A stretch of DNA of 64,000 nt from Monocercomonoides exilis PA203 (taxonomy: Eukaryota > Protista > Preaxostyla). Positions 13,790 through 54,559 of this stretch are shown here, piece by piece. A program made the position numbers and the translations under genes. Each line of letters begins with the position of its first letter. Within the stretch, counting starts at the first letter, position 1. The notes below the pieces were generated by a model that saw nothing but the letters and a program-made list of their open reading frames with translations, had not been told where the DNA came from and did no database searches. Location of the stretch: NCBI GenBank assembly GCA_001643675.2, contig LSRY02000016.1, positions 806,001 through 870,000 on the forward strand, given 5' to 3'.

Positions 13790-14460
13790 AACTTGAATTA
13801 AATTCATTCAAAAATGCAAAATTGCATACCCATTTAGCATTTTTTGCATCCTTCTTCCATCTTTTCAAACTTTTTTTTATTCTTTTCACAGTCTTCAAAA
13901 ATGGTTATTCATTTTATAATATTCCTTTTCTTGTTGCATCGCTAAGAATTCATTAAGAAACACTCACAATCATCAATAACTTCATCTTCAAAAGTTGACT
14001 GATGAATCTCCCTTGAAATGAGAGATATGATTCTTCCATAAAACAGATTTTCAACTATGAAAATTGAGTTTCCTTCTTCATCATTAAAAAATATGTGTAT
14101 GAAATGGATGCAATTTAATCTTCAGTAATCCTTTGGAACTTGGAATAACAGAACAATGCAGCTGTGCAGCCCAACAAGCTTTTTTTCGGTAACGAGCAAA
14201 TATTTATGAACTTCTTCAAAAATTTAATCTATCCTATCAAATAAGCACTTCTTTTGAATCTTCCTTGCTCTTTTCATTTTTCTTCTTTCTGTCAATGCAT
14301 TTCATTAAATCATCAAATTGGCTTGCTTCAATGTGTGCAAATAATAGTTTATTTAAAAGAATTCCTCACAATCAAAAATCATGAAATTTTCGATTTATCT
14401 CAAACTGACAAGCAATCGTTATGGCAAATCTGTTCAGATTTCTGTGCTCCAAATGATGTC
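13790..14460 (-). pseudogene. Decayed member of the lineage-specific family also at 36.8 kb and 53.2 kb
   Basis: Minus-strand KLVGLHSCIVLLFQVPKDY* and EIHQSTFEDEVIDDCECF align with ELVGLIGGVVNVFRQAKDNY and KMKQSTLQVEVIWDCLEF of the 53228 ORF. Contains stops. Confidence 0.65.
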
Positions 14461-14523
14461 CGGTTATTATTAAACCTCCACCTTTTTTTTCTGTGACCTC
14501 TTTTTTATTACAAAAGTTTCATA

Positions 14524-14683
14524 TCCCACTTTTTGAAACAATAACTTGATTTTTTGCATATAAGGAAACTTTATTGAATATTAAAAATGCATTTTGAAAT
14601 AAAGCCTATTTCTCATGTTGGGGATGGGGCAGTTGAAAACTCTCCATCAAGCTTCCACGAGTAATTGGTTGGTTTAAAGGAGT
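14524..14683 (+). ncRNA. Candidate promoter plus structured leader/ncRNA of pogo element A
   Basis: TCCCACTTTT 14524-14533; ATATAAGGAAA 14558-14568; outer stem 14604-14614/14659-14669; inner hairpin 14623-14634/14638-14648; AAGGAGT 14677-14683. Same layout as 23310-23479. Confidence 0.45.
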
Positions 14684-14793
14684 GAAAAGCCACTTTGCTC
14701 ATTCAAAATATATTTTTTTGAGTTTTTTTTTTTGAAATTCAATTTATTTTTTAAAAAAAATATGAAAATCACATCAAAATTTTAAAATGAAAA

Positions 14794-16124
14794 ATGAAAA
14801 TTCTTGTTGAAGAAAAAAGAAAAGCAGGGCAGACTAAATTAAAGCATGCGATGTTATCTTTTCAATTCAGAAAATACAAGAATAAACTTGAACGAATGGC
14901 ACATGTTGTGTATGATGGCGTCGTCAGGATCACGGACGCCATCGATTCCAAGCAATTCAGCCGCAGCAGTATTAAAAACGCCGTTCGGGCGTTGAGAACT
15001 AAAAGGCAAGTTGGAAAATTCGTGAGACCGCAGATTATAAACAGAGAGAAGGAAGAAACAGGAACGGACGTTATTAAAATAGACTCCGTTTGCGGAAGCA
15101 GTTTGATAATGAAAAAAACAAGAAAATAGGTTTGTTCAAGTTTTTTATTGTAACAATTACATTTTTTCTTTCGATGGAAAATGTTGAGAACGATACAAAA
15201 GAAGAAAACGAGCCACATATCAAAGTTTCAAATGCTGCGGCGTACGGGTTTTTGAAGCGGCATCCCGAGTTAAGGAAGAGCAAACCAAAAAGTTAAGACA
15301 TAAATCGGCTGGCTGTGTCATGTCAAACCGTGATGAAGCCCTGTTATCAAATGGTAACAGGTCAACACGAAAAAAATCATTTCACACCTTCATTAATATA
15401 TAACGTTGATGAGTCATCAGTGCGAGTTCCATCTTCTGCTAATATTGAATTTATCCATTCATCTGGACAAAGCTGTGGGTATTGCTAAGAAGCACAAAGA
15501 ATGGACAATGCAACACTAGTTGCTGCCGTGGCTGCAGATGGTTATTCATTGCCTTGCATCATTCTCTGGCCAAGTGAAAAACAACCGGACGAACTTTAGC
15601 TTCTTTTCTCTCCAACTCTGGACATCTGGCCTAACAAAAGTGGCTGGATGGACAAGCAAAACTTCAAAAAATATACAGAAACAGTTCTTCTCACTTCCAT
15701 CGTTGAAAGGAGAAAGTACATGTCACTGGAAACAGAGAAATGTCTTCTTTTCATCGACTCTCATCCTTCACGCGGTGATCCTTCAATATGGAAAGCCTTT
15801 TCAGAAAACAACATTGACGTCGTGACATTCATCCCCCACAGTACTCATTTGTCTCGGCCACTCGATGGAGGAGTATTTGCGACTCTCAAAACTTTTCTTT
15901 CTTCATCATTTGATATTCCCGCATCAACGTCATCGTCTGCTTCGAGAAAAGCACTTGTCGACGTGCTTCCTCAAGCAATTCACTCCGCTTTCACTCATTC
16001 TTTCATCAAAAATGCTTTTGAAGAAAGCGGAATCCTTCATTATACATACGGTCCGGTTCTTCGCAAACCACCAGAAACATCAAAATACCCTCTTCCTTCC
16101 CATCGTAACCGTTTTGATTATTAG
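14794..16124 (+). pseudogene. pogo/Fot-like DDE_1 transposase (DD35D) with internal stops
   Basis: HTH-like N-terminus, YGFLKRHPEL (CENP-B/Tc5-type HTH), IYNVDESS, KSGWMD, LLFIDSH followed 35 residues later by the D of RPLDGGVF. Stops at about 15294, 15487 and 15598. Confidence 0.88.
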
Positions 16125-17419
16125 GGAAAGTCTATCACTTAAAAAGAACTTCTCGACGATTGGGAAAGATTTTTGTGGATTAATGAAGAGATAGAGAAGG
16201 AAAAAGATTTGAAACAAGAGAAAGAAAACAAAAAAGATGAAATTGTTGAATTCAAACATAAAATCAAATGAAAACGTTCTGACGTTATTTTTGATGACCC
16301 AAACGAAGAGGAAAACGAAGAGATGTAAAGAAAACAAGGAAAAAGAAAGATAATTCGAAGAATTGATCCTTCTTTTGTATTTTTTTTTAATTTTTTCTTA
16401 AATTTTCACTTCAAAAATTTGGGTCAGAATAAAAAAATGGGTTAAGGTTAAATGATAACACTAAGATTGTCTCTATGTTTTCATTTGCAAAAGTTCTAAT
16501 TCAATTTTCTTTTATGAAAAAAAGGAAAATGCAATTCGAAAAAGCAAAAAAATTAAAAAAAATGAAATTGAAATGCACTTTCACCTTGTCCAAAGAAGCT
16601 CAAAGTTCTTAAAACTTTTCTTTGACTTCTTTAAATGTTCAATCGTTTTTATTTTGATCAATGCAACTTTCACGAAACAAAAAATACATTTGAGTATTTT
16701 TTCATTTGAAATATTCCATAATAGATACATGATCAATACAAATTAAAAAAACGTGTATTCTAACAGGAATCGCTTCGTAATATGCAGGCATGTACCACAG
16801 TTGTCAACAGCTTTTTGAAACATGGATTCGGAGAACCAGGATGGATGCTTTTATTCCTTCATCCTTCATTGAAAATCTAGAAAAATTTTTCGTAAAGTTA
16901 TTGAAAGAAAATATAACAGAACGAACATTTATTTAATTTGCAAAAAAGTTATAATAACATAACTTCTTTGTTTATTTGGATTAATTAATGTTTCAAATGT
17001 TATAAAACTGCAAAAACAAACTAACTTCGAAAAAATCTTTCTCTAATTCTTTCTGTTCTGAATAGGCATGAAAGGGTTTTGGTTATCGGTTGCGTGTTCA
17101 ACATTTTCCATTTGGAAAAACAGGAGATAATCAATTAGAATGTGACAAAAAGCGAATTCTATTCCTCCAAAAAAACTTTGAAAGATATCTAATTGGAAGA
17201 ATTTGTTTCTTCAAATGAATAAAAAAAGGATAATTGCTTCAATTCGAAATAATTGTCTTTTCACTCTTTCATTTTTGACTCTTTTCTTGTTTTTTACGTA
17301 CCAAATAAAGCAAGCCAAATTTATATGTTGGCGTGCTGGATGTGCCACAGTTCTTGTTGCAATGGAAACATAAGAAAATGAAAAAATTTGAATGTTCAAT
17401 TTCATTTTTCTGAACAATT

Positions 17420-20051: not shown

Positions 20052-21583
20052 ATATGAATGAGTTTTTTGATGTTTTTTATTTGTTCGTTTTTTTTATCAC
20101 AGTTTTATTGTTAGGGACATTATTTAAATCAATATGTTGGGGTGTAATTGTTCAGCATAAATTAATTGATTTTTTAATAAATATTTATTTTTGCACGGAT
20201 CAAAAAAGCTCTATTCAAATTTGGAACAAGTTAAATTGAATCTATTCAAATCATGTTTTAGCGCCTGCTAGTTGAATTTCAATTATAAAATTGTTTTCTA
20301 AAATTATTGCAGAATATTGTTGATGTCAAAAATTTTGTTCAATGCCTTTTTAAGTAGGAAAAAATTAATTGATTCATAAAAAAAAGAAATTTCTGCACAA
20401 AAGAAAGACAGAATCACTTTATGAAACAGTTAACAATAACGTTATAATCATCCACACGTATTTTTATTAACGGTCGTATATTGCACAATAACCAAAATTT
20501 CACAATATGCCAAAACCAAGTGAATATACTGCACTTTTTATATTAAAAATATTTTATTATTTTTTTTGTTCAAATATTGTCCTCAGGCAATGAAAACCAA
20601 TCTCAAATGTTTGTCTTTGATGATGCTAACAATTTTTTTATGTGTTTGTGACAATAAGCAACGATATGGCTAATTAATTTCGTTAACTTCCTTTTGTTTA
20701 GTTATCAAATTTAATATAAATATCTTAATATCATCAATTTTCAGTTCTCACTCATGAAATTTCACTTTAATAGATACCAAAACCCAAAAAAATGTTATTA
20801 TCACCATTACAGTGAAGTTATTTAAGTTTAAACAGTAATTTGATGATAATATAAATTTTTAATAAAATTTGAAAATTAAACAAATGGAAGTTTAAAAATA
20901 AAAAAATGAACCATGTATTCAGTCCAACCTGGATATAATAACATTTAATATAATCTTCATCGTTATGCTCACATTTTTTCAATGCATCGAAATTTTTGAC
21001 CGACTTTTTATTCAATTGTCATCACATATAATCACATGGGAAATATATATAATCACATTTTATTTCTTAATGGGTCGATTTTTCATTGAAAAATCGATTT
21101 TTTGATCAAAAATATAAATTTTTTGATTTCAAAATAATGTTTTTGAAAGACTAAATTATGTGAATGAAAAATAAGTATTTTTATTTCAATTAAAAAATGT
21201 GTATTTGTGAAAAATTTCCAAAAACAAAAAATTTGATACGAAAATTTTTTATATCAAAAATTATATAGGGTGATTTTTTTATCCGGACATAATTTTTATT
21301 TTTTGATAGAAAAAAAAATATTTTTTTATAAATCGCATGTTGAAATTTTCGAAAAAACGCAACAATCAATTGTTAATATAATCCATCAATTCTCTTTTAA
21401 TAATTTTTCTGGTATTTCTTCGTTCATTATCATCTTCAAAATCATCATCTTTTAAAATTTGGGATTTTGATATTTTTCTTTTTTTCGGCTTGTCTTCAGA
21501 AAACAAATCTTTTTCAATTTTTTCTACAGCAGAATCATCAATATTCTTTTCATCTTTCATCTTTTTGTATTCTTTCCATTCAT

Positions 21584-22960
21584 CTAAAAATGCTTGGTCG
21601 GGAATATTTTTTCCATGGAAATTGAAACGATGGGTTTTTTTTTCAGCTGAACTGAAGGAGTGTCAGGCAACTTCACCAATACAGTATTGGACTGCCCAGA
21701 CAGCACGCAGCTCCTTTCAAATGCAGAGTGAATTGTTGAAGGAAGCAATGCAGTTTGCAAAGCCCGTGGCAAGGCATTTGCAACTGCTTTTCGTCTGAGT
21801 GCGATCGAAGAAGATGGAACAACATTTTTTGAATTGAAACATCTTTTAAACACATCAAAAACTCCACGGTCAAGTGGCTGTGAAAGATGAGTGCTGCATG
21901 GAATAAACGTAACGACACCATTTGATGCAATTTTTTTTTTACCAAAGATCTGGCTGTGCTCTTGAAGGATGTCAATCAAAGAGAAGCAAGCATCTATCTT
22001 CGTTCATATCCAGCAATTTTCTTCTTCGGACTATTCAAGAAAGCAGACTCTATTCAGCATAGCGAGCAAACAATGCATCTGTCATCCATCCATCATTGTC
22101 TGCTCAGGCATTAGGCTGCGGGTTGAGCAAAATCTTCATTTCTGGTAACAGTTTTTTTGGATGGGAAAAGAAAAAGGCTTGGCAAAAAATAACCATCAGC
22201 GGCAACTGCAACCACAAGGGCGGAGTTTGGCATGTTGATTGGTGTTTTGGAAAACCCGACTGGAACATCTGAAGGATGAACAGCAAGTTGTTTTGTGGAG
22301 TCGGAGAGACGCAAAGAGGATTCGTCGGTGTTGAAGATGAGTGAAGTGGAGTATTTGTATGTGTTATGAAGTGATTGAAGAAGAGAGAAGAAAGGTTGAA
22401 GAGATTGTTTATTTGATACAGAAAAACGTTGAATGTCAACGTTATGAGGAATGGATGTTTTGAGATCTGGATTGCGTTTGACAAACGAATACGGAGTTGA
22501 TTTTGAAATTTTAACTTCTTGATCTTCTTCTTCTCCACTTCGAATTTTTCTATCAGTTAGCACTGATTCCATCTTTAATTATTATTAATCATAAATATAG
22601 ATAAGAAAAAAATATTAGTGCAAACCAATCGTTTAGTTTGAGTTAAAGAATAACTCACTCCTGTGATGATTACTATTCTGATTACTCCGGTTATTGCGTC
22701 TTTTTCTTCTTTTGTAACCAGCTCTGGTCGACGAACTATTCCCACGAATCTTCACTTTTCAACAGCAGAAACAGCACGATTGATGGATGAAAAAGAGAAT
22801 TCATTAAGATTAATATCTACGGTTTCACTTCATTTTCCATCAGCAATAATTGTATCAATTCGAACAAATCGATTTTTGATTTGATGGTTGTGGAAAGATT
22901 TTGTCAAATCTCTCAATTTCGTCAAACCACTTTCTTATCTTTGTTTCACTACGCTCATAC
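21584..22960 (-). pseudogene. pogo/Fot-like DDE_1 transposase, multiply frameshifted
   Basis: YSFVKRNPDL, LIFNTDESS, VAVAADGYFLP, TFIPCSTHLSQPLDRGVF. Homologous to 14794-16124. Candidate intron gtgagt...aaag at about 22573-22639. Confidence 0.88.
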
Positions 22961-23018
22961 AAATAAAATATTGGTTATGATCATTCTTTTTATTTTTAAA
23001 AAAAATTTTTTTTGAAAT

Positions 23019-23258
23019 GGGTTATTCTTTTTGAAAAGTCGCAAATGTTTAATTTTCAAACAAATCAAAAATTTCATATTTTGCTCAAATTTCTGTTTCT
23101 TCTCACGAATTTTCTTAAGAATGTTTGAAATAGCATTATCAAGATATTGATTCCATGTTTGTGAAGTTTAGTGTATGTCAACAAATTTTTGAGCAAAATA
23201 TGAAATTTTTGATTAATTGGAAAATTAAACATTTGCGACTTTTCAAAAAGAATCACCC
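23019..23258. mobile_element. MITE, 240 bp, ~71-bp TIRs, 4-bp TSD AAAT, nested in the 5' region of pogo B
   Basis: 23018-23089 vs the reverse complement of 23188-23259, 68/72 identical. aaat at 23015-23018 and 23259-23262. Terminus gggt(t/g)attctttttgaaa is nearly identical to that of the 19790 MITE. Confidence 0.88.
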
Positions 23259-23309
23259 AAATGAAAAAAAATAAAAAAATTTTTTTTCGATTAAATTCTA
23301 ACTTAGTAA

Positions 23310-23479
23310 TACCCCTTGCTATTACCTAATCTCCTCAGGGGAGGCACAAATCAGAGATGGAGGAGCTGGCCTTCCCATCTCCCCCCATCAGAGATTAGGT
23401 ATAGTAATTTGATGTTAATTTCTGACTTCTGACTTTTCCTTATATAATCAAAACTATTTATAAAATATGAAAAGTGGGA
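23310..23479 (-). ncRNA. Candidate promoter plus structured leader/ncRNA of pogo element B
   Basis: On the minus strand: TCCCACTTTT (23479-23470), ATATAAGGAAA (23445-23435), perfect 11-bp outer stem 23401-23391/23333-23323, inner stem gagatgg/ccatctc, AAGGGGT (23317-23311). A GC-rich island in very AT-rich DNA. Confidence 0.5.
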
Positions 23480-23949
23480 AGAAATAATTCATAATTAAAA
23501 TTTTTGTCCGGATAAAAAAAAATGTCCGGAAAAAAAAACCACCCTATAATTTTTTTCTGTGTGAAGCGATTTCGTTTGTAATCACAATCGGATAAAGTCA
23601 CAAAAAGTTGTGCAAAATACGATGTGATAAAATTCGGATTAGACTGAACTTCTTTCGAAAAGAAATAAATTTATTCTTAAAAAATAAATTTTTTTCCAAT
23701 GAAAATATGTGAAAATTTTTATTTTGTTTTAAAAAAATTTTTCATTTTGAATTGTTTTTAGCGTATCAAAAGGAAAGAAAGAAAATGAGCCATAAAAGAA
23801 AAAGGATTTTTCCATCTGAGATCATTGCAATCAAATATCCTTTTAAAAAAAATATCGAATCAATTCATTTAAACTTTTCAAAATTTTAAACAAATTGCAT
23901 TAACTCAATATTTTTGTGAAAATAATAAAATATGATTTAAATTTCCTTT

Positions 23950-26900
23950 CTATGAAATCTTGCTCGTATCGTTTTTTCTTTTCATTTTTTGAATAAATGA
24001 AGAAAGCGAGAGAATAATTGCTTCTTTTTCGGTGTCTCTTTCCTTCCTTCTCCTCCAATTTTCTCTTGCTATCCACTCGCTCAGTTCAGCAAATGGAGAA
24101 GCATTGTTACGCCCATGCGCACACTCAAAGCAGCACTCGCAAGCTTTGAGATCATCCATCATTTCATCAAGCTGCTCAATGCTCAAAGGATCTCCAAACA
24201 TTACAGCTCCTCTGCATGCACGAGACGCTAATATCCTTCTGAATGGAGAAGGAATCATCGCGTCACAGCACCCGCAATCACGAAACTCATTTAAAGTCTG
24301 TAGAAAAGTGGAGGGCTGAACACAAACACCGAATATTGCTGGAACAGAATGAAGACGCCATTCAACTGTTTCTGATGTGGAAGCAAAATCTGCATCAAAT
24401 GAAAGGAAATTGATATCTGGATCTTTGTCAATGTTTTTGTGATCCACTCCTTTCACAAGTTCAAGATCAAACCAAACAGCATGAAAATAATCTCTGTGCT
24501 GCTGAATAAACACAGTGTCGTCTTCGCTCAGAAAAAGGGTTACAGGAGGAGAAAGCTGATGTGCTGAAAGAGACAAATCGTCCTTCAAACGAGAAATAGG
24601 CTGCACAGCAGACAAATAAGCTTCATGTGAAAGTCTTCCAAACGAGAATGAGCGAGGCGTTTCCAATTGAATTGATCTCAACTGCTTTTCTGTCTGCTCT
24701 TCAATGACTTTATCGCTGTCCAAATGATAATCCAGTTCAATGGTTTCGCTATTGTCTTTCTCGTTTTTAGTTTTATTCGAATTAAATTCGTTTTTCAGTC
24801 TCAGATTTTCATTTATTTCTTTCAATCGATTGGATATTTCGCTTTGCAAAATTCTTTCAAAATGCTCCAATCTAATCCTCTCTGAAACTGCATGCTGGTC
24901 AAACATTGTGAGAATTATGCGTTGTTGTGCATCCAACTCATCTTTGCTTTGCTTGTGCAATGCCGTTGCATCACAAGGAAGTTTCAATACGCTAACAACA
25001 AATCTGTTGCTTATTTGTCCTATCACAGTCGAGTGCGAAAGATGGGAGCGTACAAGGGAAAAAGCTGGAGGAATCCTCATTAAGGAGTTGTCAGATAGAA
25101 GGAATGGAAGCCTCTCAGGCTTCGTATGCGAGCTGCAACTGGTTTGTTGCTTATTATGCAAAGTTGTGGAGTCTAATGTTAGCCCCTCTTTCGAAATATG
25201 AGATGACATAGTTTCAGCAAATGGTGAAGTAAATGAAATCATTATTCCGCTTGAATTTTGAAAAGATCCCTTTGAAGCATCTGTTACAGTTGTTTCTTGC
25301 CTCTTTTGAGAATCTTTTTCGCTTTTCTGATCAAATGGCAAAGGTGCATCCTTAATAGATTCGTCATAACGAAAAGCAGCATTGCTTGATAAGGAAACTT
25401 TCATGTCTTCATTCAAAAAATCTTCAAAAGTTGTTTCATTGCAAGGAATCCGATCTTCTTTTGCACATTCGAACTCGAGTCTCTGAGAATGAACTGGAAA
25501 AACACGGACGTCATTCACTTCTTCGTGTTTGCAGCAATCAGAGTGCTTACACCTTTGAAAATGAACTGATTCTGAACCATCGCCTGCGTCGCTTTCATCC
25601 AGAAAACAGCACTGCGAGTCATCAGATCGCACAGAATGAGATGAAATTTCAGACCCCGTTGAAGTTCTTTGAAAACGTTTTATTTTCCTTTTTGTCTCAC
25701 TAAATTTTCTGTGTTTGGAAACACTACGATGACGATGACCATTGCAAGAATGACATTTATGGCAACGAACCGAACAGCATGAACGGCAAGAAGAACTGGA
25801 AGTATTTGAAAAAGAGGAAGAATTAGAAGAACATTCGGAACAAACTGATTCAGAATTGTCGGAATCTGCACTTTCCGATGAACGGTGGTGATTATGACTT
25901 CTACTGCAATGATAGTGATGGTGATGCAATTTCCGATGGTTATGTTTTGAATGTGATCGGAAATGTGTTGAATTGTCTCGTTCCTCCCTTAATCTTTTCG
26001 TGTGATGCGATGTTAAATGTAGCTTCCTCTGTTCTTGCTGTTGGGGTTCTTTTCTTTTTTCGTCTTCTTTCTCCTCTTTTTCAATCATTCTGATCTGATT
26101 CTTCAGTTCTTCTCGTTCATGTTTTCTTTTCTTTATGCATTCCTCTGTTTGGCTTTGGCTTTGACTCAACACTTCATCAACCTGCTTGTCAAAAAGGCTG
26201 TTTTCGAATTTGAAACGAGACGCATTTTGCTTGGAAGTCATCAGAGCATCTTCGGTTTTGAATGCTTCGTGCGTCTTTTCAATGGGAAGGAGCGGAACAT
26301 TCGACGATGAGGCCATTTCTCTCAAGCGCCTGCTTTCTTCTTTGTGCAGAATTTCGTCTATTGAACGCTGAACAGAATTCACAAATGGATCGGGCTTCAT
26401 TGATGTAATGTCATCAAAAGATGACTTTGTTGGAAAAACAAACGGAGATGAATTGCTTGAGTGAAACACATCATTTGATGAAGAAAAGAATGCAGGCGCT
26501 GTACGAGGAGAAAATGAATGATGTGATAAATTGCCAGTTTGCCTTTCAAACGAATGATAAGCGCTTTTTTGGAATGGAAAAGAAGAAAATGAAGCATTGT
26601 GAACTGGAGTTGTTTTACGCAAAGTGTTCGAAAATGGAAAACCTTCTATTTGCTTTATTCCCTTGTTAAGGTCAAATCCAAAGCTGTCAAATTTGTGATG
26701 ATCATCAGCAAATGACAGAACAGGAATGTGCTTTCCAATAGGAATTGTGAATGGATGTGGTGTGTTGTGAATATGTGAAGTGTGATGATGTGATGTTGAC
26801 TTGTAATCTTCAGAGGGAAGTAATATGTGAGATGGGCTGCTCGGAGAATGAGAAAGTGAATTCGAACGCGAATGTGAATGTGAATGTGAATGTGAATGTG

Positions 26901-28803
26901 AATGTGAATGTGAATGATCGAGATGGGTCTTGCTTAAAAATGTTTGACTCATAAATATGGGACTTAGTTCATCTTTTTCTTTCGATATAGGACTATATTG
27001 CGACAATGGAGAAGAAAACGGTGATATATCCATTGGGATTATATCTGATGATGATGGATGACTAAGCAATGAAGGAGTGTGTTCTTTAACTTCTTCCAGT
27101 TGCTTGCCTATTTCCATAAAACAGTTTTTGATGTCTTCATCATCAAAACTGGATAAAGAAACATCACGTTTTTTATTCACCGAATCCTTAATTGCATTGT
27201 CAAGAGGAAAAGAACAAGAGTTCTTTTCAATTGAATTGTAATTTAGTGCTTGTGGTTGTTCCATGCTTTTCTGTTCTTTTATATAAGTTTCTGCTTGCTG
27301 TAGCCTCCGTTCCATCTTTAATCTCATTCGTTCAAAATGAGTCATTCGAAAATTTTTGTCTGGAGTTGATTTTGAAGAAGAAGAAGAAGAAGAGGACGAA
27401 GAAGAGCGTAGAAAAATCTGTTCGTCCATTGATTGACCATCTTCGCTGGGTTGCTGAGATAAACGTTTATCTTCAGATTGACGTTTTATTGAATGTTCTG
27501 GTGTTTGAATAACGTCTAACGAATGCTTTTGAGATTCCATTTGTTTTTCTTGTAAGTAGTTTTCTTTCGCTTTAACATTGGCGAGAATGGCAGAAATGAT
27601 AGCATTCCACTCAGTCTTTCCAATGACCGCACTATAAGAGTCTCTTTCGAATAAAAATGAAACATAAGCAGGCGATACTTCTATTCTAATAACAAAAAAA
27701 GGATAAAATTTGTTCGATTCGCTGCTGCGAAGCTGCTTCACTGATTGAGACAATATTTGTAATGATTGCTGATGTGTTGATGAAGGTGATGACTGATAAG
27801 ATAAGCATCGGTTTAGCTCTTGGTGCAAAGGGGACTGCTTCACTAATCTTCCATTTATAAATAAAAATTGAATGCTTTTTGTTTTGTTTCCGAAATGTGG
27901 TAGAGATATAAGTCCATTCGCAGAAAATTTAAAAGCAAGTGATTCGTTGCTAAGAATCTGAAGAGAAGAAGATGAAAAAGATCGAGATGGCCCATGAATG
28001 GAAAAATGAGTAAGTTGTTTTGCTCTCTCCTTTCCGAACAGAAAAGAAAACATTTCAACATCTGATTTCTCTCCAGGTGTGCAAAAAGTCATCGGATCAT
28101 CAACTGGCGAAATGGCTTTAAAAGAAAAACGAATTTGCGGCAAAAATATCCACAAGCAACGCACCAAACCCAGTAGAAGTCCTCCCCATTTTTTTCCAGC
28201 CTTTCCTCCGTTATCAGATTGTTCGTCAAAAAGATACCTTCGTCTAACTGGCTGGTTTGAAAATAACCCAAGAACTTGAACACGGGCCCAAGACTCTCCA
28301 TATTGCCCACGATTGTAAAATAGAGGAGAAGGAGGTTTTACACATCCAGATGCAAAGCCACAATATTGTTCCTTTCCTTCTTTAAAAATTTTAACATACG
28401 GTTCGTCTTCAAATACAACTTTGCTTTCAACTTGGAGGCAAGATACATCTGCAATTGAAGCAAGAGCTTCACCACGAAAACCGAAAAAAGAGGAAGAATA
28501 CAAATCATCATAAGATGAAATTCGAGATGTGGAATGATGCTTTCCACACAAAGGAAAATCATCCGGGGAAATACCATTTCCATTGTCTGTAACTGACAAA
28601 TTCATAGTTGACATGTCAAAAGCAACATCAATCCTCGTAGCTCCAGAATCAAGAGAATTTAAAATCAATTCGTAAAGAACATGAAGTGGAGATGAAATGA
28701 CCGAAGACGAATGAATTGCCTTGCTACAATCTTTAGATAGAACATGTATAGTTCGTCCGAAATTTGTATTCGAGGAAAATCCTTGGTTTGAGTCGGAATT
28801 CAT
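23950..28803 (-). CDS. MLH3: MutL-family mismatch-repair/meiotic endonuclease MLH3
   Basis: GHKL ATPase motifs ELILNSLDSGA, DNGNGI, FGFRGEALASI. C-terminal DQHAVSERIRLE, ACRGAVMFGD and CAHGR are MLH3-type. The likely start is the ATG at 28803 rather than 28941. Confidence 0.9.
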   Translation of the reverse strand: MNSDSNQGFSSNTNFGRTIHVLSKDCSKAIHSSSVISSPLHVLYELILNSLDSGATRIDVAFDMSTMNLSVTDNGNGISPDDFPLCGKHHSTSRISSYDDLYSSSFFGFRGEALASIADVSCLQVESKVVFEDEPYVKIFKEGKEQYCGFASGCVKPPSPLFYNRGQYGESWARVQVLGLFSNQPVRRRYLFDEQSDNGGKAGKKWGGLLLGLVRCLWIFLPQIRFSFKAISPVDDPMTFCTPGEKSDVEMFSFLFGKERAKQLTHFSIHGPSRSFSSSSLQILSNESLAFKFSANGLISLPHFGNKTKSIQFLFINGRLVKQSPLHQELNRCLSYQSSPSSTHQQSLQILSQSVKQLRSSESNKFYPFFVIRIEVSPAYVSFLFERDSYSAVIGKTEWNAIISAILANVKAKENYLQEKQMESQKHSLDVIQTPEHSIKRQSEDKRLSQQPSEDGQSMDEQIFLRSSSSSSSSSSSKSTPDKNFRMTHFERMRLKMERRLQQAETYIKEQKSMEQPQALNYNSIEKNSCSFPLDNAIKDSVNKKRDVSLSSFDDEDIKNCFMEIGKQLEEVKEHTPSLLSHPSSSDIIPMDISPFSSPLSQYSPISKEKDELSPIFMSQTFLSKTHLDHSHSHSHSHSHSHSHSRSNSLSHSPSSPSHILLPSEDYKSTSHHHTSHIHNTPHPFTIPIGKHIPVLSFADDHHKFDSFGFDLNKGIKQIEGFPFSNTLRKTTPVHNASFSSFPFQKSAYHSFERQTGNLSHHSFSPRTAPAFFSSSNDVFHSSNSSPFVFPTKSSFDDITSMKPDPFVNSVQRSIDEILHKEESRRLREMASSSNVPLLPIEKTHEAFKTEDALMTSKQNASRFKFENSLFDKQVDEVLSQSQSQTEECIKKRKHEREELKNQIRMIEKEEKEDEKRKEPQQQEQRKLHLTSHHTKRLREERDNSTHFRSHSKHNHRKLHHHHYHCSRSHNHHRSSESADSDNSESVCSECSSNSSSFSNTSSSSCRSCCSVRCHKCHSCNGHRHRSVSKHRKFSETKRKIKRFQRTSTGSEISSHSVRSDDSQCCFLDESDAGDGSESVHFQRCKHSDCCKHEEVNDVRVFPVHSQRLEFECAKEDRIPCNETTFEDFLNEDMKVSLSSNAAFRYDESIKDAPLPFDQKSEKDSQKRQETTVTDASKGSFQNSSGIMISFTSPFAETMSSHISKEGLTLDSTTLHNKQQTSCSSHTKPERLPFLLSDNSLMRIPPAFSLVRSHLSHSTVIGQISNRFVVSVLKLPCDATALHKQSKDELDAQQRIILTMFDQHAVSERIRLEHFERILQSEISNRLKEINENLRLKNEFNSNKTKNEKDNSETIELDYHLDSDKVIEEQTEKQLRSIQLETPRSFSFGRLSHEAYLSAVQPISRLKDDLSLSAHQLSPPVTLFLSEDDTVFIQQHRDYFHAVWFDLELVKGVDHKNIDKDPDINFLSFDADFASTSETVEWRLHSVPAIFGVCVQPSTFLQTLNEFRDCGCCDAMIPSPFRRILASRACRGAVMFGDPLSIEQLDEMMDDLKACECCFECAHGRNNASPFAELSEWIARENWRRRKERDTEKEAIILSLSSFIQKMKRKNDTSKIS
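26870..26916 (-). repeat. Hexamer tandem repeat encoding (His-Ser)n in MLH3
   Basis: (gaatgt) about 8 copies on the plus strand. Confidence 0.9.
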
Positions 28804-29026
28804 GGAAAAGCCATTGTGCCGGTATAGAATTAAAATTATTATATAAAAGATCTCATTGTGAAATGTAATTTTTTGAAAAAAAGAAAGAAAGAAAATTAAA
28901 TGAAAAAATATATAACTGAGAAATACAACATCAACATACATAATTATAAACTGTATTTATAACAACAAAGTTGAAAACGAAAACGCAAAAAGAAAAAAAA
29001 AAAATACTCTGAAATATCACAATTGA

Positions 29027-32000
29027 TTATAACATATCATTAACAATTGTTTTGTAATCTCCATTAATACTTTCTGAGCTACCTTCACTCGCACTATTAT
29101 CAATATTATCTCCACACTCTGCATCAATATTGCATTCACCATCGACACTGACCTGCACAAGCCTGCTTCCAGGCAGAGGCGCCTGATACACCTGCGCCAC
29201 TCCCAAAGGTGTTGTTGATCTTTCCACAATTTGATCAGGTGAAAATTCTATTTCTTCTGTCGCATCGCTCTCTTCATTCAAAACAGGCTGCCGTGTTCTT
29301 GTGCGGTGTCTGTGATGATGTTGATGCTGATGTCTTCTGAAGTGGGCTGAGCGTGTGTGCTTCGGAGCCTGCTGCACTTTGGTTGAATGGTAGCTTTCGG
29401 AGACAGAACGAGGAGGAGGCGGGAAAGGGGGTGTGGGTGGAGTGGCAATAGAGCCAGAATTGGAATGAGAGTGGGAATTAGAGTTAGAACTGGAAATTGG
29501 ATTGGATATTAGGAAAGAGCCAGAACGAGAGCCAGAACCAGAACCTGAGACAGAGCCTGAGACAGAGCCTGAGACAGAGCCTGAGACAGAGCCTGAGACA
29601 GAGCCTGAGACAGAGCCAGAGCGAGAAGAAGAGCGAGAAGAAGGAGCATTGGATGACAAAGTGATGGAAGAAGAGCGAGAGGAAGAAGAAGATGATGATG
29701 ATGAAGTGCTTTGTGCAGAAATTGAAGCGGACGATGAAAGAGAAGGAGATTTCACAGGGGAAGGGCGGAAGGGAAGAGGAGGAGTGGGAGAAGGAGAGGC
29801 TGGGTGTGAAGGAGAAGCAGGGCGGATGAGAGGAATCCATTGGCTGGCAGGGAATGAGGCAGAGGGAAAGATGGAAGGAGAGCGGGAGAGAGAGAAAGAA
29901 GAGGAGGAGGAGGAAGAAGAAGAGGAAGAAGAAGAGGAAGAAGAAGACAGAGAAGGGAAAGAAGATAGAGAAGCTGGGGGAGGTGGCGAGGCAGCCGAAG
30001 TGTTGAGAGAGGCCTGGAGGGACGAGGAAGAAAAAGAAGAGATGGAGAACGGCTGGGCAGAGGAAGACGGGGTGAGCAGGCCAGACGAAAGAGGAGCTGA
30101 GTCCAGGGGGATTTCAGTGGCAAGCGAAGAGAAAGTGTCCAGTTTGCATTCAAAAGGGAAGTAAACTGACCAGACATGGAAGGACTCGAATTCAGGGAAG
30201 TATGCGTCCTCCAGGGGCTGGTAAGAGGTGTTGGTGTATTTGTCCCTGTGCAGCATGATGTGGATCCACACAGACTGCGTCTGGTTGGCGAGGTCGTTGC
30301 GGATGCGCTCTTTGAAGCAGTCGCAAAAGAAAGTGCCAAACAAACACGAAGTCAGATGCTTCGCGAGAAAACGGAGCATTTTGTCGTTGAACTGGAACAA
30401 GTCGGGGCTTTTGTGCAGAATCTGATGGACACAGTCCAGAAACTGCAGGAACACGGGTGACATCTGCTCCACATCATATCCACTGCTTCCACTACCACTT
30501 CCACTGCTACTTCCTCCCTTTTCGCTTCCTCCACTTCCTCCTCCTCCTCCACCTCCTCCTCTTTCCCCACCACCACTACCATTATTACTGTTACTATTGC
30601 CATTGCTACCATTACCACTGTTATTACCACAACTGCTATTACTATTGCTCCCACTCCCTTGTCCCGACTGCTGAAACGCCGATGCAAACGGCAGCGAATC
30701 CAACACAGACTCAGAAGGGTATATTGCCTGCCTCTTAACTGGATACGACCCTGTGCGTGTGGCAAAGCGGTGTCCGAACTGCACCCAGTCTTTCTCCACA
30801 AGTGTGATAAACCCAACAAGCGTGCGATAAAAGGGCTCCAAAAACAGAGCAGCCAATGAACACAAGCAAGGCGTGCGGTCCCAGCCGTCGGAGCAATGCA
30901 CAAGCACGTTCCGTTCACTCAGCACGGCCTGCGCAATTGCCTGCGAGCACTCCAGCAGCTGCAGCACATGCGAATTCCACTGGCTGCTCCGCACAAGCGC
31001 GATGAACTTGTCGTTCGTGAGCCCTTCCTCCACACCCACCCGGCACGCCTCTGTCAGCTTCCACAGGCTCTTCCTCATTGTGTGGATGTTGCCTATCCCC
31101 AGAAACTCTACAGACGCAAAGTCCAGCGCCTTCTCGTCTTCCGACCCGCCTTTCTTGAAGCGGTTGCCCAGTGCTGCTATTTTGCTTCGTGCGTCGACGA
31201 TGTGCAGAGGGAGAGGAGGAGGAGAGGAAGAGGAAGAGGAGGTGGAGGAGCTGTGGAAAGAGGATGTGGTGTGAGGGGAAGGAGAGCGGGAAGCCATGGG
31301 GGAGATTGGGAGCGGAGCTGGGGGAGAAGAAGGGAGAGGAGGGGAGAGGAGAGGAGAAGGGCGGTGTTGGATGTGGATTGGAGAGACAAGAGCAGAGGAA
31401 GTGTGGAAGGTGATGCCGGAGGGGAGAGAAAGAGGAGCAGGAGGAGAGATGCGGGAGAGGTGAGAGGGATGAGAGGGATGGGATGAAAGGGTTGAATGAG
31501 ATGAAGAGGAATCAGAAAAGAGAGGGGAACGAGACTGTTGAGAAGAAGAGGAAGAAGAAGAAGATGATGATGATAATGATAATGATGAAGGTTTAGCTAA
31601 TGCAGTTGTAGAAGCTGACAGATGTGGAGAAGGGTCAGAAATGACAGTGAATGGAGAGGAATAAAGTGACGTGTGAAGAGAAAGTGTCAAAAGGGAGCCT
31701 TCAGAAGCTGAAGAAGAAAGGTTCTTTGGCAGTTCTTCTTCTGTCAAGTTGGTGATTTGTGGCTGAGTGTTGCCTGGTGAATTGTCCAGAGGTAGCTGAG
31801 GAGGAGAGGCAGAGGGAGAAAGAGAAGGGCGGATGGGAAGAGGAGCAGAGGGCTTGAGAAGAGAGGTTGGATGATGTTGATTGGATTTCTCTTTATTTTG
31901 TTGAGTTTGCTGTTGATTTTGTTGGTTTTGTTGATTTTGTTGTTGTTTTGTATTGATTGCTGAGTCATCTTCAGTGTCTGAACATTGAAGAGTTTGAAAC

Positions 32001-35000
32001 GTGGGGGAAGCAGATGAGTTGTTAGAGCGGAGGGAGAAGCGAAGAGGAGGAAGAGGTGGAGGAAGAGGAGGGGGAAGAGGAGGAGGAATAGAAAATGGGG
32101 TGTTTGGTTTGTCTTCGTTGTTGGTTGTGGCAAGATTGCAGAAGACGGATGATGTGGAGGATTGGGGAGGGGAGTGTTTGAAGAGAAGAGAGGAAGAAGA
32201 AGAAGATGAAGAAGAAGAGGAAGAAATAGAAGAAGATGATGATGATGATGATTGTGAAATAGAAAAAATTGAAGAAGAAGAAGAGGATGAGGATGAGGAA
32301 GAAGAAGAAGAAGAAGAAGAAGAAGGAACAGTCATCTTCAACCCAGAAAAGGAAGAAGTGAATGAAAAATCAGGTGAATTTCCAGATGAATGAAGAGTGA
32401 ACTCAGGGATGGGTGCTTTGTGCATAGAGACGACGGCAGAGGAAGAGCGTGTGAGAGGAGAGGCAAGTGGAATAGGAGAAGAAAGAGGGCGAGAGGAAGA
32501 AGAGGAGGAGGAGGAAGAAGAATGAGAAGAAGAAGAGGAAGATGATGATGATGATGATTTATTATTTGAATTATAAGGAAAAGAAGAAGAAGAAGAAGAA
32601 TATTTCGATGTCGACAAATAAGTTGTGCTCAATGAATGATCTGAGGGAGGAGGAGGTTGAGGTCTGCTGTGGGTGAAAAGAGGAGGAGAAGCAGAAGAGG
32701 AATGGAAGGTAGCAGAGAGAAGAGGAGGAGGGGAAAGCTCATATGAAGCAGAAGGGGAAGCAGGCAAAGGATCAGAAATTGAATGAGATGAAGGAGAATA
32801 AGAGGAAGAAGGAGAAGAAGGAGAAGGAGATGAAGGAGATGAAGGAACAACAAGAGAAAAGCCGTTGGTGAAAGAGGAAGAAGAAGAAGATGTGGAAGAA
32901 GAAGAAGGAAGGGAAAGATGTTCAGCAGTTGTGAAGATATCATCAGGATGCTTCATTGAAATGAGATCAGAAGTAGCAGGAGCAGATGAAGAAGAAGAAA
33001 AGGGGGAAGAAGAAGAAGATGATGATGATGATGTTTGAATTGATGTTAATGTAAATGAAGTGGGAGGAGAAGAAGAAGAAGGCAATGATGATGATGATGA
33101 TGATGAATTTGAAGAAGAAGAAGAAGAAGACTGCAAGAAAAGCGACGGGAAATCGCCACAGCTTGAAGAGAATCTTCCATGTGTGCATTTTCCATCAGGC
33201 GAATAAGGAGCAAGCGTTGTTGTGAAAACTACATCATTTTCGCTGGAGACGGTTGATTTGAAAGAAGAGGAGAATTCTGAAGAGGAAGGGAGGTTGACAT
33301 CAGAAGCAGACGCTTCTGAGCCGAAGGAGCGGAGGGAAGAAAGAGAATGGAGGGAATTGAAGGTGCATGTTCCACTGATGCTGCCTCTACTGCTTTTATC
33401 GTGATCTTTGTCTTTATCTCTTTCTTTTTCTCTTTCTCTTTCTTTTTCCTTTTCTCTGTCATTGTTTTTATCTTTATCGTTTTCTCCCTCTTTTATGCTA
33501 TCTTTATTAATTTGCTGATAAAAAGGCAAATGCTGTTCCTGTTCTTGACTTCTATCTTTTTCTATTTCTCTTCCAATATCTCCATTGTCATCAGCATCAC
33601 TTTCTTTCTCTCTTGCTTCTGAATTCTTTCTGTTTGAAGATAAGTTATCATTCATATTTGTGTCAATGACTTCTTCTTTGGTTGAAGAAGAAGAAGAATA
33701 TGAAGAAGAAGAAGAAGAATATGATGAAGATGATGTTGTGGATGATGATGCACGTGAACTTCGTCGTGAGTGATCAGAAGAATTGTATATTGAAGAAGAG
33801 GCAGAAGGCGAATACTCAACACTCCAGTACAATTGCTCAGCTTCATTGCTTGCTCCTTTTTCTTCCTCTTCTTCCTCTTCTTCATTGTACTTTTCTTCAT
33901 TCGCACTTTCTTCTTCTTCTTCTTCTTCTCCATCTTCTCTTTTCTCTTTCTTCAGCTTCGATCCCAAATGTGAAGGAAAATTTTCTTTCTTTGAACGAGA
34001 TTGCACTTCTTTCTTGCTGAGGCTGAATGAAAAACGCGAAGGCGGAGGTTTTGGTGAAGGAGCAGGAGACGGATGCGGAGAAACATTTTCCGGCTCCTCC
34101 TTGTTTTGGTCAAATGTTAATGGGCCTCGGAGAAATTCGGAGAAATTTTCGAGGGATGGAGGAGGGAGCGGAGGTGTTTTGTGCTCAACTGGTGAAAGAG
34201 GAGAAGCAGAAAATGAAGAAGAAGAAGAAGAAGAAGAAAGCGCAGGAGAAGACGAAGGAGAAGACTGTGGTGATCCCCCAGGCACAATCACCGCATAATC
34301 CTCTTCTCTTCCCCACACTGTGTGCTCATCTGTATTCTCGAGCGTCTCCTCATCTTTTGACTGAAATTGCGTTCCCTTCGCCTTTTCCCTCTGAATGTCT
34401 GTTGCATCATCAGTCCAAGCCGTCAGCCTTGTTGCTTCTTCGATCTTCTTCGCCTTCTCCTTCTGCGCATCGCTGTGAATTGCGCTGCTTTCGAGTGCCT
34501 TGAGCAGTGTTTCTGATATCCCCTCTGTTTTGATTCTCTCCATGTTCATCTCCCCCGAAGACTGCTGCTGCTGGTTCTGCTGCACCGCTGCCAGCATCTC
34601 CTTGATGACAGCCTCGCACCGCGCCTCAAACAGCGCCGTGTCGCTTTCTGTGTCCCTCCGCACTGCTTCCCCCACCGCCCCTGCAATTGCCCTCAAAAGC
34701 ATCTCGTCGATGGCGTTGCGGATGGACATCAAGCCAGACATTGGTTGAGACGAGCGGCAGATGGCGTGCCCGTTCGTGTGGAGGTATGTCAGCACAGGAA
34801 GCCGCCCGCTGCTGCGAAATGTGGCAGCGTCGCGCAGCTCTCCGTCGCTGACCACTGCAGGCACACACAGCAGCGGCGGGTACGTCTCACACACTTCAAA
34901 GTGGCTGTTGGCCTTGCTGATGCGCCACCCGCTCAGGAACGAGCTGCTCCGCGTGCTTGTCGGCGAGGACGGCGGCTGGGCCTGCAGAGGGGGAGAGTGT

Positions 35001-35752
35001 GACGGTGGTGATGATATGGACGATGATGCTTTTTCATCGATATATGTTATCCCCATTCTTTTGTATTCGTATAATAGATCGCAAAGCGACCATTCTGTTG
35101 TCTTCAATCTGTAATTCTCAGAAAGATGATTATATAATGGCATCAACGCTGATTGAAAAACATATGCAAATAAATGACGTTCTGAAACTCCTGCGGGAGT
35201 TTGAGGAAGCTCCAAAAATAAATCTTCAGAAGAGTATAAACTAATTTTTAAATAAAAAGAATGAATTAATAAAATGATAAGTGCATTTGAAAGTAATTGT
35301 TTGCAAAAACAAACGTCACTTGACGATTGTCCTTGAGAGTGAGCTTTAAAACTTGGGAATCCGGCTCTCCATCACGTAGTCGTATTTTTCCTCTCTGAAT
35401 GCCTAGAATTGACTTGAGAGGAATTTGTAATTTTCTGTGCTTCTGACAAAATAATAAAAATTGTCAATTTTTATAAAAAGAAAATATAAACTGTTGCTTG
35501 CTTTTGCCATAGAGGAACGAAGACAAAACGATAGTTTGTGATCCACATGGTTCCGACGAGATGGAGAGAGTTAAAGCCAACACCTGAAAAGCCATTTCTG
35601 CGCAAGCACGTTTCTCCAGGAAGCAAAATTGAGTCGAACAAATTTGCTTCTGAAATTGAAAGAAAAAATAAAAAACAAAATTTAAAAAGTTCAAGCAACA
35701 ACCCCATTTTAAATGTATAAACAATTTTCAAACTATTTTGCTTATTGGCCAT
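29027..35752 (-). CDS. Myotubularin-family phosphoinositide 3-phosphatase (GRAM + PTP domain), spliced at the 5' end
   Basis: GTMWITNYRFVF (GRAM, upstream exon), CETYPPLLCVP, FRSSGRLPVLTY, ICRSSQP, active site VLVHCSDGWDRT, SPVFLQFLDCVHQI, LFGTFFCD. Start codon is inferred. Confidence 0.92.
29544..29617 (-). repeat. 12-bp tandem repeat x6 encoding (SGSV)n
   Basis: cctgagacagag repeated six times perfectly. Confidence 0.95.
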
Positions 35753-53227: not shown

Positions 53228-54559
53228 TCAAGCATTCACAAAATAATCAAATGTATTTTTTGTTAATTCCTTTAGTTGTTGGTGAAAGCAATCAATCGTT
53301 TCATGAAAGCTTGTAATGACATCTTCGTATCCGTCTTCTTCCAACTTTTCCAACATTTTCTTTTTGTTTGCCTTTCTTTTCACTTCTTCAGCTTTGTCAT
53401 CCGTCTTTTCTTTCAGTCTTTTTAATATTGTCAAAAAGAACTCTAAGCAATCCCATATCACTTCAACTTGCAAAGTTGACTGTTTCATTTTCTCTGAAAT
53501 CAGATCAACAACACCTTCCTTTTGTAAACTATCAATTTCTATGTTTTTGTTTTGAACCGCTCCTCTGAAGGAAAAAATGCACCATTTAGTTATATTTTTG
53601 TAATTATCCTTTGCTTGTCGAAACACATTCACAACTCCGCCAATAAGCCCAACAAGTTCTTCGTTCCACAATGTGCAGCATTCTAAGTAATTATTAATTA
53701 CATTGATCCATCTATTAACGATATGTACTTCTTTCATTTCTTTTCCTTCCATTTTCTCTTCTTTTCTCTTCCAATCTACGCATTTTGACAGATCTTCCAG
53801 TTCTTTTGCTGCTTCTCTCGCAAAACACAATTCATTCTCAATCACCCATTTTGAATTGTTGCCTTCGTAATATCTATCCATCAAAAACTTCCATGCTGAT
53901 TGATAGGCAAGGCGAGTGAGGTTGTAATGTTCTTGATGATATTCGATGATTTTTTTGATTTCATTCAGATACGGTTCTTTATCAATACTCTGTAAAAAAA
54001 TTAAGAAAAAACGTAAAAATATCAAAAATAATGTTTGCTGTTCTCATACAGAATAAAACTGAATGTGACTTAATGCAAGCAAAGACATTTCCACTTCTTT
54101 TTGAACTTCCTCGTTTTCCTCCTTTTTCAAGGCAATTTTCAGAAGGCAGTGAAAACTAATGTTAAAGACTCTCATTGAAGGACCTTCATCACACAGTAAA
54201 AGATAACATTCACAAAGATCAATCATCAGCTTTTCGTTCTCATTTTCTTTTTCCTTCTCCTCCTCAATTATTATCTTTTCAAGTCTATTTTCCAATATGG
54301 AAAAATCAAATGAAAAATTGATTATGTTTTTTAACATTTTGCGATGTCCCATGTGCCTCAACAATAAAACTGCATTTTTCATCATCAGTTTCCTTTCTTC
54401 AATAAGTTTGCCTATTTCATTGAAATTTTTTATTGATAAAATTGAATTAAATTCTTCTCCTTCCATTTTGTCAATAAGCATGTTCATATCTTCAATTTTT
54501 TGTATCTGCTCATTTTCTGTGTAATGCTCCAGTTCAGAAAGAAATTCTTCAAAAGGCAT
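53228..54559 (-). CDS. Lineage-specific multicopy hypothetical protein (helical)
   Basis: Two ORFs joined by the phase-0 GT-AG intron 53990-54049, at a position equivalent to that in the 36.8-kb paralog. Confidence 0.8.

Follow-up and report, generated by a model that had tools for sequence, protein, structure and literature searches.

The window analysed here, a stretch of 64,000 nucleotides of Monocercomonoides exilis DNA, carries two transposons, elements A and B, both decayed copies of ~2.05-kb pogo families. Ahead of the transposase, and on the same strand, each of them has a promoter-like unit followed by a structured RNA domain. An earlier note, made from the letters of the window, had listed the motifs of this module, and all of them are present in both copies where it had placed them; its core claim, that a promoter-like unit and a sense-strand structured RNA are conserved upstream of the transposase, also stands. 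Our search covered the M. exilis genome, 82.3 Mb in 101 contigs of the published long-read assembly (PMC8767320). The features of the two window copies are as follows.

Element A
14459..16464 (+): element A, a decayed ~2.02-kb pogo (DDE_1) copy with 86% identity (BLASTN) to an intact-looking relative (L073)
14525..14529 (+): CCCAC upstream box, read in the sequence; its spacing to the TATA box is constant genome-wide
14557..14565 (+): TATA box, 27 nt past CCCAC; CATATAAGG in this copy, TATAAAAGG in the family consensus
14591..14709 (+): structured RNA domain, from alignments and folds; covariance-model match at 14591-14716, 103.6 bits
14591-14598 with 14702-14709 (+): closing helix, from alignments and folds
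14603-14670 (+): long hairpin, outer stem 14603-14614 with 14659-14670
~14678-14698 (+): small hairpin, from alignments and folds
14713..14734 (+): T7 and T11 runs, immediately 3' of the RNA domain
14794..15129 (+): transposase start codon and exon 1 remnant, 84% identity to A-family exon 1

Element B
21264..23546 (-): element B, pogo subfamily B1, 90-93% identity to L062, split by a nested element
23474..23478 (-): CCCAC upstream box, read in the sequence and from the genome-wide spacing pattern
23438..23446 (-): TATA box, TATATAAGG, 27 nt past CCCAC
23289..23414 (-): structured RNA domain, from pair counts; covariance-model match at 23288-23416, 95.1 bits
23414-23406 with 23297-23289 (-): closing helix, from pair counts
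23404-23319 (-): long hairpin, outer stem 23400-23390 with 23331-23321; the small hairpin follows
23264..23279 (-): two T7 runs, 3' of the RNA domain
23020..23258 (no strand): nested foldback element of ~240 bp, with long inverted arms and the ends GGGT...ACCC, inserted into element B 3' of the T-runs and 5' of the transposase start
22982-22973 (-): conserved GATCATAACC motif, upstream of the transposase ATG
22958-22956 (-): transposase ATG, matching NCBI protein models P0003 and P0010

The carriers have the DDE_1 transposase, the terminal inverted repeats (TIRs, ~35-45 bp) and the TA target duplication of pogo / Tc1-mariner elements, and NCBI names the transposases that they encode DDE superfamily endonuclease of M. 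exilis. The DDE_1 match falls in an open reading frame at 15648-16124 in element A and is weak in element B (20.3 bits against a Pfam cut-off of 22; E = 0.00045); an intact copy of subfamily B2 gives 54 bits, and the window copies score lower. The pogo transposase gene consists of a first exon of 116 codons, an intron of 45-55 nt and a second exon of ~404 codons, and the two exons were used as separate search queries. In four families (L066:1009-1060; L062, L069, L073) the intron has an unusual conserved 5' site, GTTTGY (...AG).

Element B has TA on both flanks of GGGT...ACCC. The two elements had been described as having unlike TIRs, which is true of their subterminal repeats, but the termini of both A and B start with TA followed by GGGT. 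The same start was seen at the left ends of all pogo families (window 23546-23500 (-); L082:~155-205; L083:~160-205). Further inside, each pogo family has a private subterminal motif of 8-9 bp, repeated twice (ATCCGGACA in B, TATTGGCAC in C), and these family-specific repeats are likely to be transposase-binding sites. Only this B copy has the nested foldback element; 2.3 kb off, at 20664-20902, is a stretch that resembles it. The neighbours of element B on the same strand are two very long intron-free open reading frames, a MutL-like one of 1663 codons (23950-28941 (-); HATPase_c_3, DNA_mis_repair and MutL_C domains) and one of 2062 codons (29027-35215 (-)).

Fold and conservation of the RNA domain

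The RNA domain is ~120-135 nt long, and 119-126 nt in the window copies. An RNA of ~80-110 nt had been proposed at first; the structured domain is there, but it is longer and includes an extra closing helix before the T-runs. The closing helix is built around the long hairpin, which is followed by a small hairpin, and the A/T runs and then the transposase ORF come after the domain. To form the closing helix, the first 8-13 bases pair with a stretch just 5' of the A/T runs, and the sequences of both strands differ from family to family. The long hairpin is 28-31 bp long and G.U-rich, with one internal loop; in family C, 18 bp are followed by a 3x3 internal loop, a further 10 bp and a loop of 6 nt. 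The 5' arm of the inner hairpin, which had been described otherwise from the window copies, is a G-run that reads G7-ARAU-G7 in intact copies. The length of the G-runs varies in old copies, and since the assembly is from nanopore reads, G-run lengths are uncertain.

The folds of the two window copies are not significant (z -0.4 for A and -1.8 for B), whereas intact representatives reach z -5.2 to -7.7, and none of 200 shuffled sequences was as stable. Covariation across families, suggested earlier as a check, was found in the form of compensatory changes. When 20 copies of five families were aligned under guidance of the model, 86% of the cells were paired, versus 43-66% with slid partners, and double changes were seen in 37 cells versus 1-12 when slid. 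Compensatory changes affect 5 of the 11 outer-helix pairs, RNAalifold recovered the three helices independently, and at one closing-helix pair of family B 12 copies have UA and 10 have CG. The fold is one of the sense strand, which exceeds the antisense strand in stability by 8.6-26.7 kcal/mol and has 4-12 G.U pairs versus 0-3.

The UGAU/UGAG loop (UGAUGG...CUGA by stem), pointed out earlier as compatible with tandem G.A pairs, is invariant in 28 of 28 distinct family B copies, but families A, C, D and E lack it, their helix at this position being continuous or otherwise mismatched. Since this motif of family B is not conserved across families, the module does not qualify as a k-turn RNA or a box C/D snoRNA, in which a terminal stem joins a C box (RUGAUGA) to a D box (CUGA). 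A hammerhead-like CUGAUGA was also tried and rejected, being confined to family B, lacking the GAAA core and having no Rfam match.

The idea that the module might be a captured known RNA, raised in the earlier note, gained nothing from our searches: Rfam 15 at its gathering thresholds gave no match over the whole window, a permissive Rfam search of the window modules and of intact B, C, D and E copies gave at most 25 bits (thresholds 42-117), which is chance level, and ARAGORN found no tRNA-like gene. Two sources of constraint at the level of coding or splicing were considered as well. A short coding exon or an upstream ORF was rejected: its peptides vary from family to family, and its frame follows G-run length. 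AAGGRGT as the donor site of an intron in a leader is not supported: the intron of the transposase gene has GTTTGY...AG, and B2 and D have no GT at that place; the GTTTGT present in family D is the 3' strand of its closing helix.

Comparison of subfamilies B1, B2 and B3 showed an identity of 97-98% for the hairpin, compared with 68-87% for the promoter spacer and 53-78% for the coding DNA, with proteins ~66% identical; the TIRs of B1 and B2 share 67% identity. The expectation that the module is conserved above the neighbouring element DNA is therefore borne out by spacer, TIR and coding sequence alike. The compensatory changes, together with conservation above that of the coding sequence, show that selection acts on RNA structure, although the near-identity of the hairpins among the B subfamilies could be due in part to recombination instead of selection. 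Copies of B2 are 99.5-99.95% identical to one another, and subfamily B2 has therefore been recently active.

Conservation above the coding sequence is also what would be seen if the constraint acted on DNA, with the inverted repeats and G7-N4-G7 serving in cis as a binding site or structural signal that a host factor or the transposition machinery needs. The G7-ARAU-G7 arm, kept in families A-E, does fit the G-quadruplex consensus (four tracts of at least three G, with loops of 1-7 nt) in intact copies (GGG-G-GGG-ARAU-GGG-G-GGG), by a criterion of sequence only. However, the arms of the helices change between families while pairing is kept, unlike a protein-binding half-site, and the pairing needs many G.U wobbles, which form on the sense strand only. 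In addition, the module is common to two transposase families with different ends, and the subterminal repeats of each pogo family are likelier transposase sites. We therefore regard a DNA-level site as improbable. What the sequence evidence favours is that the feature would be a transposon-encoded structured regulatory RNA.

Distribution among transposon families

Family B has at least 40 copies in the genome and family A ~25. A covariance model built from these two families and run genome-wide gave at least 150 matches. Reading of twelve new matches brought in families C, D, E and F. The module, first taken for a feature of two pogo elements, is in fact a cassette of many pogo (DDE_1) families (A, B1-B4, C, D and F) and of a Tc1/IS630-like (DDE_3) family, E. 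Pogo exon 1 lies downstream of the module in families C and D and in the decayed, B-like family F, and in nearly all copies read the transposase exon 1 is found ~190-220 nt past the RNA start, on the same strand. By a count made by eye, ~45 of the 150 DDE_1 matches listed have one of the listed modules 0.9-1.3 kb upstream.

In family E, DDE_3 domains of 80-84 bits are located 0.9-1.0 kb downstream of the modules at four loci, and the family E protein has no BLASTP similarity to the pogo transposase (E = 13). The family E transposase (L090:303-700; L019:2022-3201) is a single ORF of ~536 codons, and at the second of these loci the element stands head-to-head with a B3 pogo copy. By comparison of motifs, with no tree or identity figure behind it, the family E cassette is nearest to that of pogo family D. 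We infer from these sequences that the cassette passed between DDE_1 and DDE_3 elements; the likeness of motifs combined with many compensatory changes between the E and D cassettes would fit an old transfer followed by continued structural selection.

The DDE_3 family bears directly on the proposal that the RNA partners the DD35D transposase, as a specific guide or cofactor of the pogo enzyme in the manner of an IS110 bridge RNA or a TnpB/Fanzor omega RNA. A structured non-coding RNA encoded beside the transposase and conserved with it is what such a partner would look like. The same cassette, however, also serves the DDE_3 transposase, which is dissimilar to pogo, and the presence of the module in two different transposase families makes a specific partner of one transposase unlikely. 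Moreover, the highest-scoring pogo DDE_1 clades have no module among the 150 covariance-model matches listed, and there is no guide-like variable segment, the variable part being the G-run only. To our knowledge, pogo and Tc1 enzymes work without RNA, which also counts against this reading, and we consider it very unlikely indeed.

Only one fragment was seen to lack a transposase downstream. Two copies on one contig (L051, L052; L076:~380-640) run from the box to the A-run with neither TIR nor transposase. The ORFs found ~0.8 kb downstream of them belong to a host gene family with a member in the window too, at 53228-54025, and the solo module looks like a transposon fragment beside this family. 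Outside M. exilis, an exact scan of metagenomes for the G-run motif gave 0 hits, and six distant metagenomic pogo relatives (28-42% identity) had no module by covariance model or pattern. The closest protein from elsewhere, P0028 from a JGI metagenome (51% identity), is encoded on a 1.08-kb contig without upstream DNA and comes perhaps from another oxymonad.

Promoter-like geometry and proposed expression of the cassette

The cassettes of families A, B, C, D and E have the same layout, a CCCAC box, exactly 27 nt and a TATA box, and the gap of 27 nt is constant in all five though the spacer sequences have diverged. The first paired base of the RNA is found 32-34 nt past the first T of the TATA box. 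In a genome-wide pattern scan, the strict box-spacer-TATA pattern gave 22 matches versus 0 in the control, and a looser box-TATA pattern gave 49 versus 1, with identical spacing in 48 of the 49, far more than chance would give. The general CCCAC-27-TATA form gave 146 matches versus 86, an excess that, as judged by eye, is made of repeated spacer classes resembling transposon families; two of the repeated classes seen in the scan, G and H, are additional to the families described above. The scan gave no sign of host genes using CCCAC-27-TATA. Taken together, we infer that this sequence pattern is a putative bipartite promoter.

The host snRNA genes offer a standard of comparison. The host U6 gene has CCAT, 27 nt, TATAAAAGG, 34 nt and then the start, with T9 at its end, whereas the corresponding distances in the two host U2 genes are 22 nt and 32 nt. 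The geometry of the module, CCA(T/C)-27-TATA(A/T)AAGG-32-34, is that of U6 and not of U2, with a single U6 gene available for the comparison. An analogy with plant USE+TATA promoters had been drawn from the TCCCAC box; it holds for the layout, but the upstream box of host U6 and U2 is of the GATCAYNNCCAT type and not TCCCAC, and it has only CCCA(C/T) in common with the box of the module. The U6 and U2 genes share among themselves a common box, GATCAYNNCCATAWT, plus TATA (L031:1480-1700 (-), L081:1400-1700 (+), L080:1500-1790 (-)). The 27/34 spacing of U6 versus the 22/32 spacing of U2 may be a polymerase-specific rule in an oxymonad, and it offers a first look at how snRNA-type promoters are laid out in this group.

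A second motif, GATCAT[AT]ACC (window 22973-22982 (-); L066, L062, L069, L082), is conserved among the pogo families at 14-22 nt 5' of the ATG and bears a close likeness to the upstream box of the host snRNA genes. Going by its sequence, it could be a further, transposase-specific promoter element; it is missing in family E.

How the cassette is expressed is the point on which the two main explanations part. The one that we prefer, at a probability of roughly one half, is that the cassette of ~230 bp at the left end of these autonomous cut-and-paste elements provides its own promoter and a structured 5' leader of the transposase transcript that acts in cis. Transcription would be expected to start at the closing helix, 32-34 nt past the TATA box, and the leader would then control translation or stability in cis, or be processed by a host Dicer. 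The RNA is probably not a cofactor of the transposase protein. The cassette is always in sense and directly 5' of the transposase ORF, and no TATA-type promoter other than its own occurs in the non-coding region at the 5' side. In family E the distance from the T-run to the ORF start is ~35-40 nt, which leaves little room for a second promoter. A benefit that is private to the carrying transcript would also explain why each family keeps its own copy.

Several observations sit poorly with a leader. It would fold at -44 to -60 kcal/mol and contain two or three conserved upstream AUGs, and such a stable fold near the cap, together with upstream AUGs, would strongly hinder ribosome scanning. The paired ends, the T-runs and the U6-like 27/34 geometry look more like a discrete small-RNA gene, and GATCAT[AT]ACC could act as a separate promoter for the transposase. 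It is therefore possible, though in our view below even odds, that the module is a stand-alone U6-type gene for an RNA of ~125-135 nt that is separate from the transposase mRNA. This RNA would be made by Pol III or an snRNA-type Pol II complex, starting ~34 nt past the TATA box and stopping at the oligo-T, while the transposase would be transcribed from its own proximal promoter. Such an RNA might regulate transposition, or it might engage host RNAi as a decoy or substrate.

The box-TATA and TATA-start spacings are fixed as in host U6 and differ from those of both U2 genes, and the ends of the domain pair in every family although their sequences differ, all of which suits a small-RNA gene. So does a run of T5-T11 within 0-8 nt past the domain in families A, B, D and E; host U6 ends in T9. 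In 7 of the 8 representatives, runs of T4 or more are missing from the body past nt 6, a weak piece of evidence by comparison with shuffled sequences (~0.4-0.65 per family). The upstream AUGs and the very stable fold are awkward for a translated leader, and the snRNA-box-like motif before the pogo ATG could supply the promoter that the transposase then needs. At least four genes with a Piwi domain and one that has two RNase III domains are encoded in the genome, and the 28-31 bp stem in a host with such Dicer-like and Argonaute-like genes has the form of a pre-miRNA/shRNA-like Dicer substrate, for which an imperfect stem of ~22 bp or more is expected; given these genes, however, processing of the hairpin is possible with either a leader or a small RNA.

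Against a separate gene, the argument from geometry is drawn from one U6 and two U2 genes, and the box shares only CCCA(C/T) with that of the host. Family C, apparently recently active, has T3-T4 only after the domain, and families A, C, D and E have TTTT at RNA positions 2-5, inside the proposed transcript. T-runs are also common throughout this AT-rich DNA, and family E is nearly without space for a second promoter. Finally, an RNA acting in trans would be a shared good, which is a poor fit with a strongly constrained copy in each family.

A broader form of the small-RNA explanation, which we put forward only tentatively, is that of a portable transposon-borne gene with a U6-style promoter and an RNA of ~130 nt with paired ends and an oligo-U tail, acquired and kept by different superfamilies. 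It might blunt or redirect host RNAi, by analogy with some viral Pol III RNAs, or its hairpin or G-quadruplex might be a switch that times transposition. If this were true, it would be the first ncRNA gene maintained by eukaryotic DDE cut-and-paste transposons. Whether the module makes a leader or a separate small RNA is cheaply testable with the existing M. exilis transcriptomes.

Comparison with known systems

As far as we know, eukaryotic pogo and Tc1-mariner elements have been described as simple inverted repeats plus a transposase gene. The literature searched contained no description of a conserved structured RNA in any eukaryotic DDE cut-and-paste transposon, which is not proof of absence. 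The cassette of M. exilis is a structured RNA with a promoter layout, kept in many families by compensatory evolution; it evolves more slowly than the transposase and is carried by DDE_1 as well as DDE_3 elements. The implication is a function that is important to the transposon and that relies on a factor of the host, not on a single transposase. A compact natural promoter-plus-RNA unit is also at hand in a protist without genetic tools.

If the cassette does encode a leader, as we prefer, its nearest functional analogues would be the leaders of the bacterial elements IS200 (5'tnpA), IS10 and ISPpu9 (PMC4513863, PMC12594629, PMC8450116). In these elements translation of the transposase is limited by the folded 5' end of its mRNA, which in IS200 also gives a small RNA by processing. 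The bacterial elements and M. exilis both have a strongly folded transposon RNA at the 5' end of the transposase transcript, which in M. exilis is predicted. However, the bacterial leaders hide the ribosome-binding site, whereas the M. exilis fold lies at the predicted cap and away from the start codon, in a eukaryotic host and in a cassette common to several transposase families.

With U6-type Pol III type 3 genes and plant USE-TATA promoters, the module shares fixed spacing of box, TATA and start, paired ends and oligo-T; it differs from them in that its box is not that of the host, it matches no known RNA family, its T-run is not kept in family C and it is placed within a transposon, directly upstream of an ORF. 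IS110 bridge RNAs and the omega RNAs of IS605/Fanzor (PMC10691335) are likewise structured ncRNAs beside a mobility gene, but these belong to one enzyme family each and have guide segments, while the module occurs with two DDE families and has no guide-like loop. The MITE-derived miRNA genes and the miRNA-like hairpins of maize transposons (PMC10004981, PMC10760457) resemble it in being imperfect transposon hairpins of ~30 bp in a host with Dicer-like and Argonaute proteins. Those hairpins, however, usually come from TIRs and are triggers of host silencing, whereas the hairpin of M. exilis is internal, has a putative promoter of its own and shows compensatory evolution in active autonomous elements.
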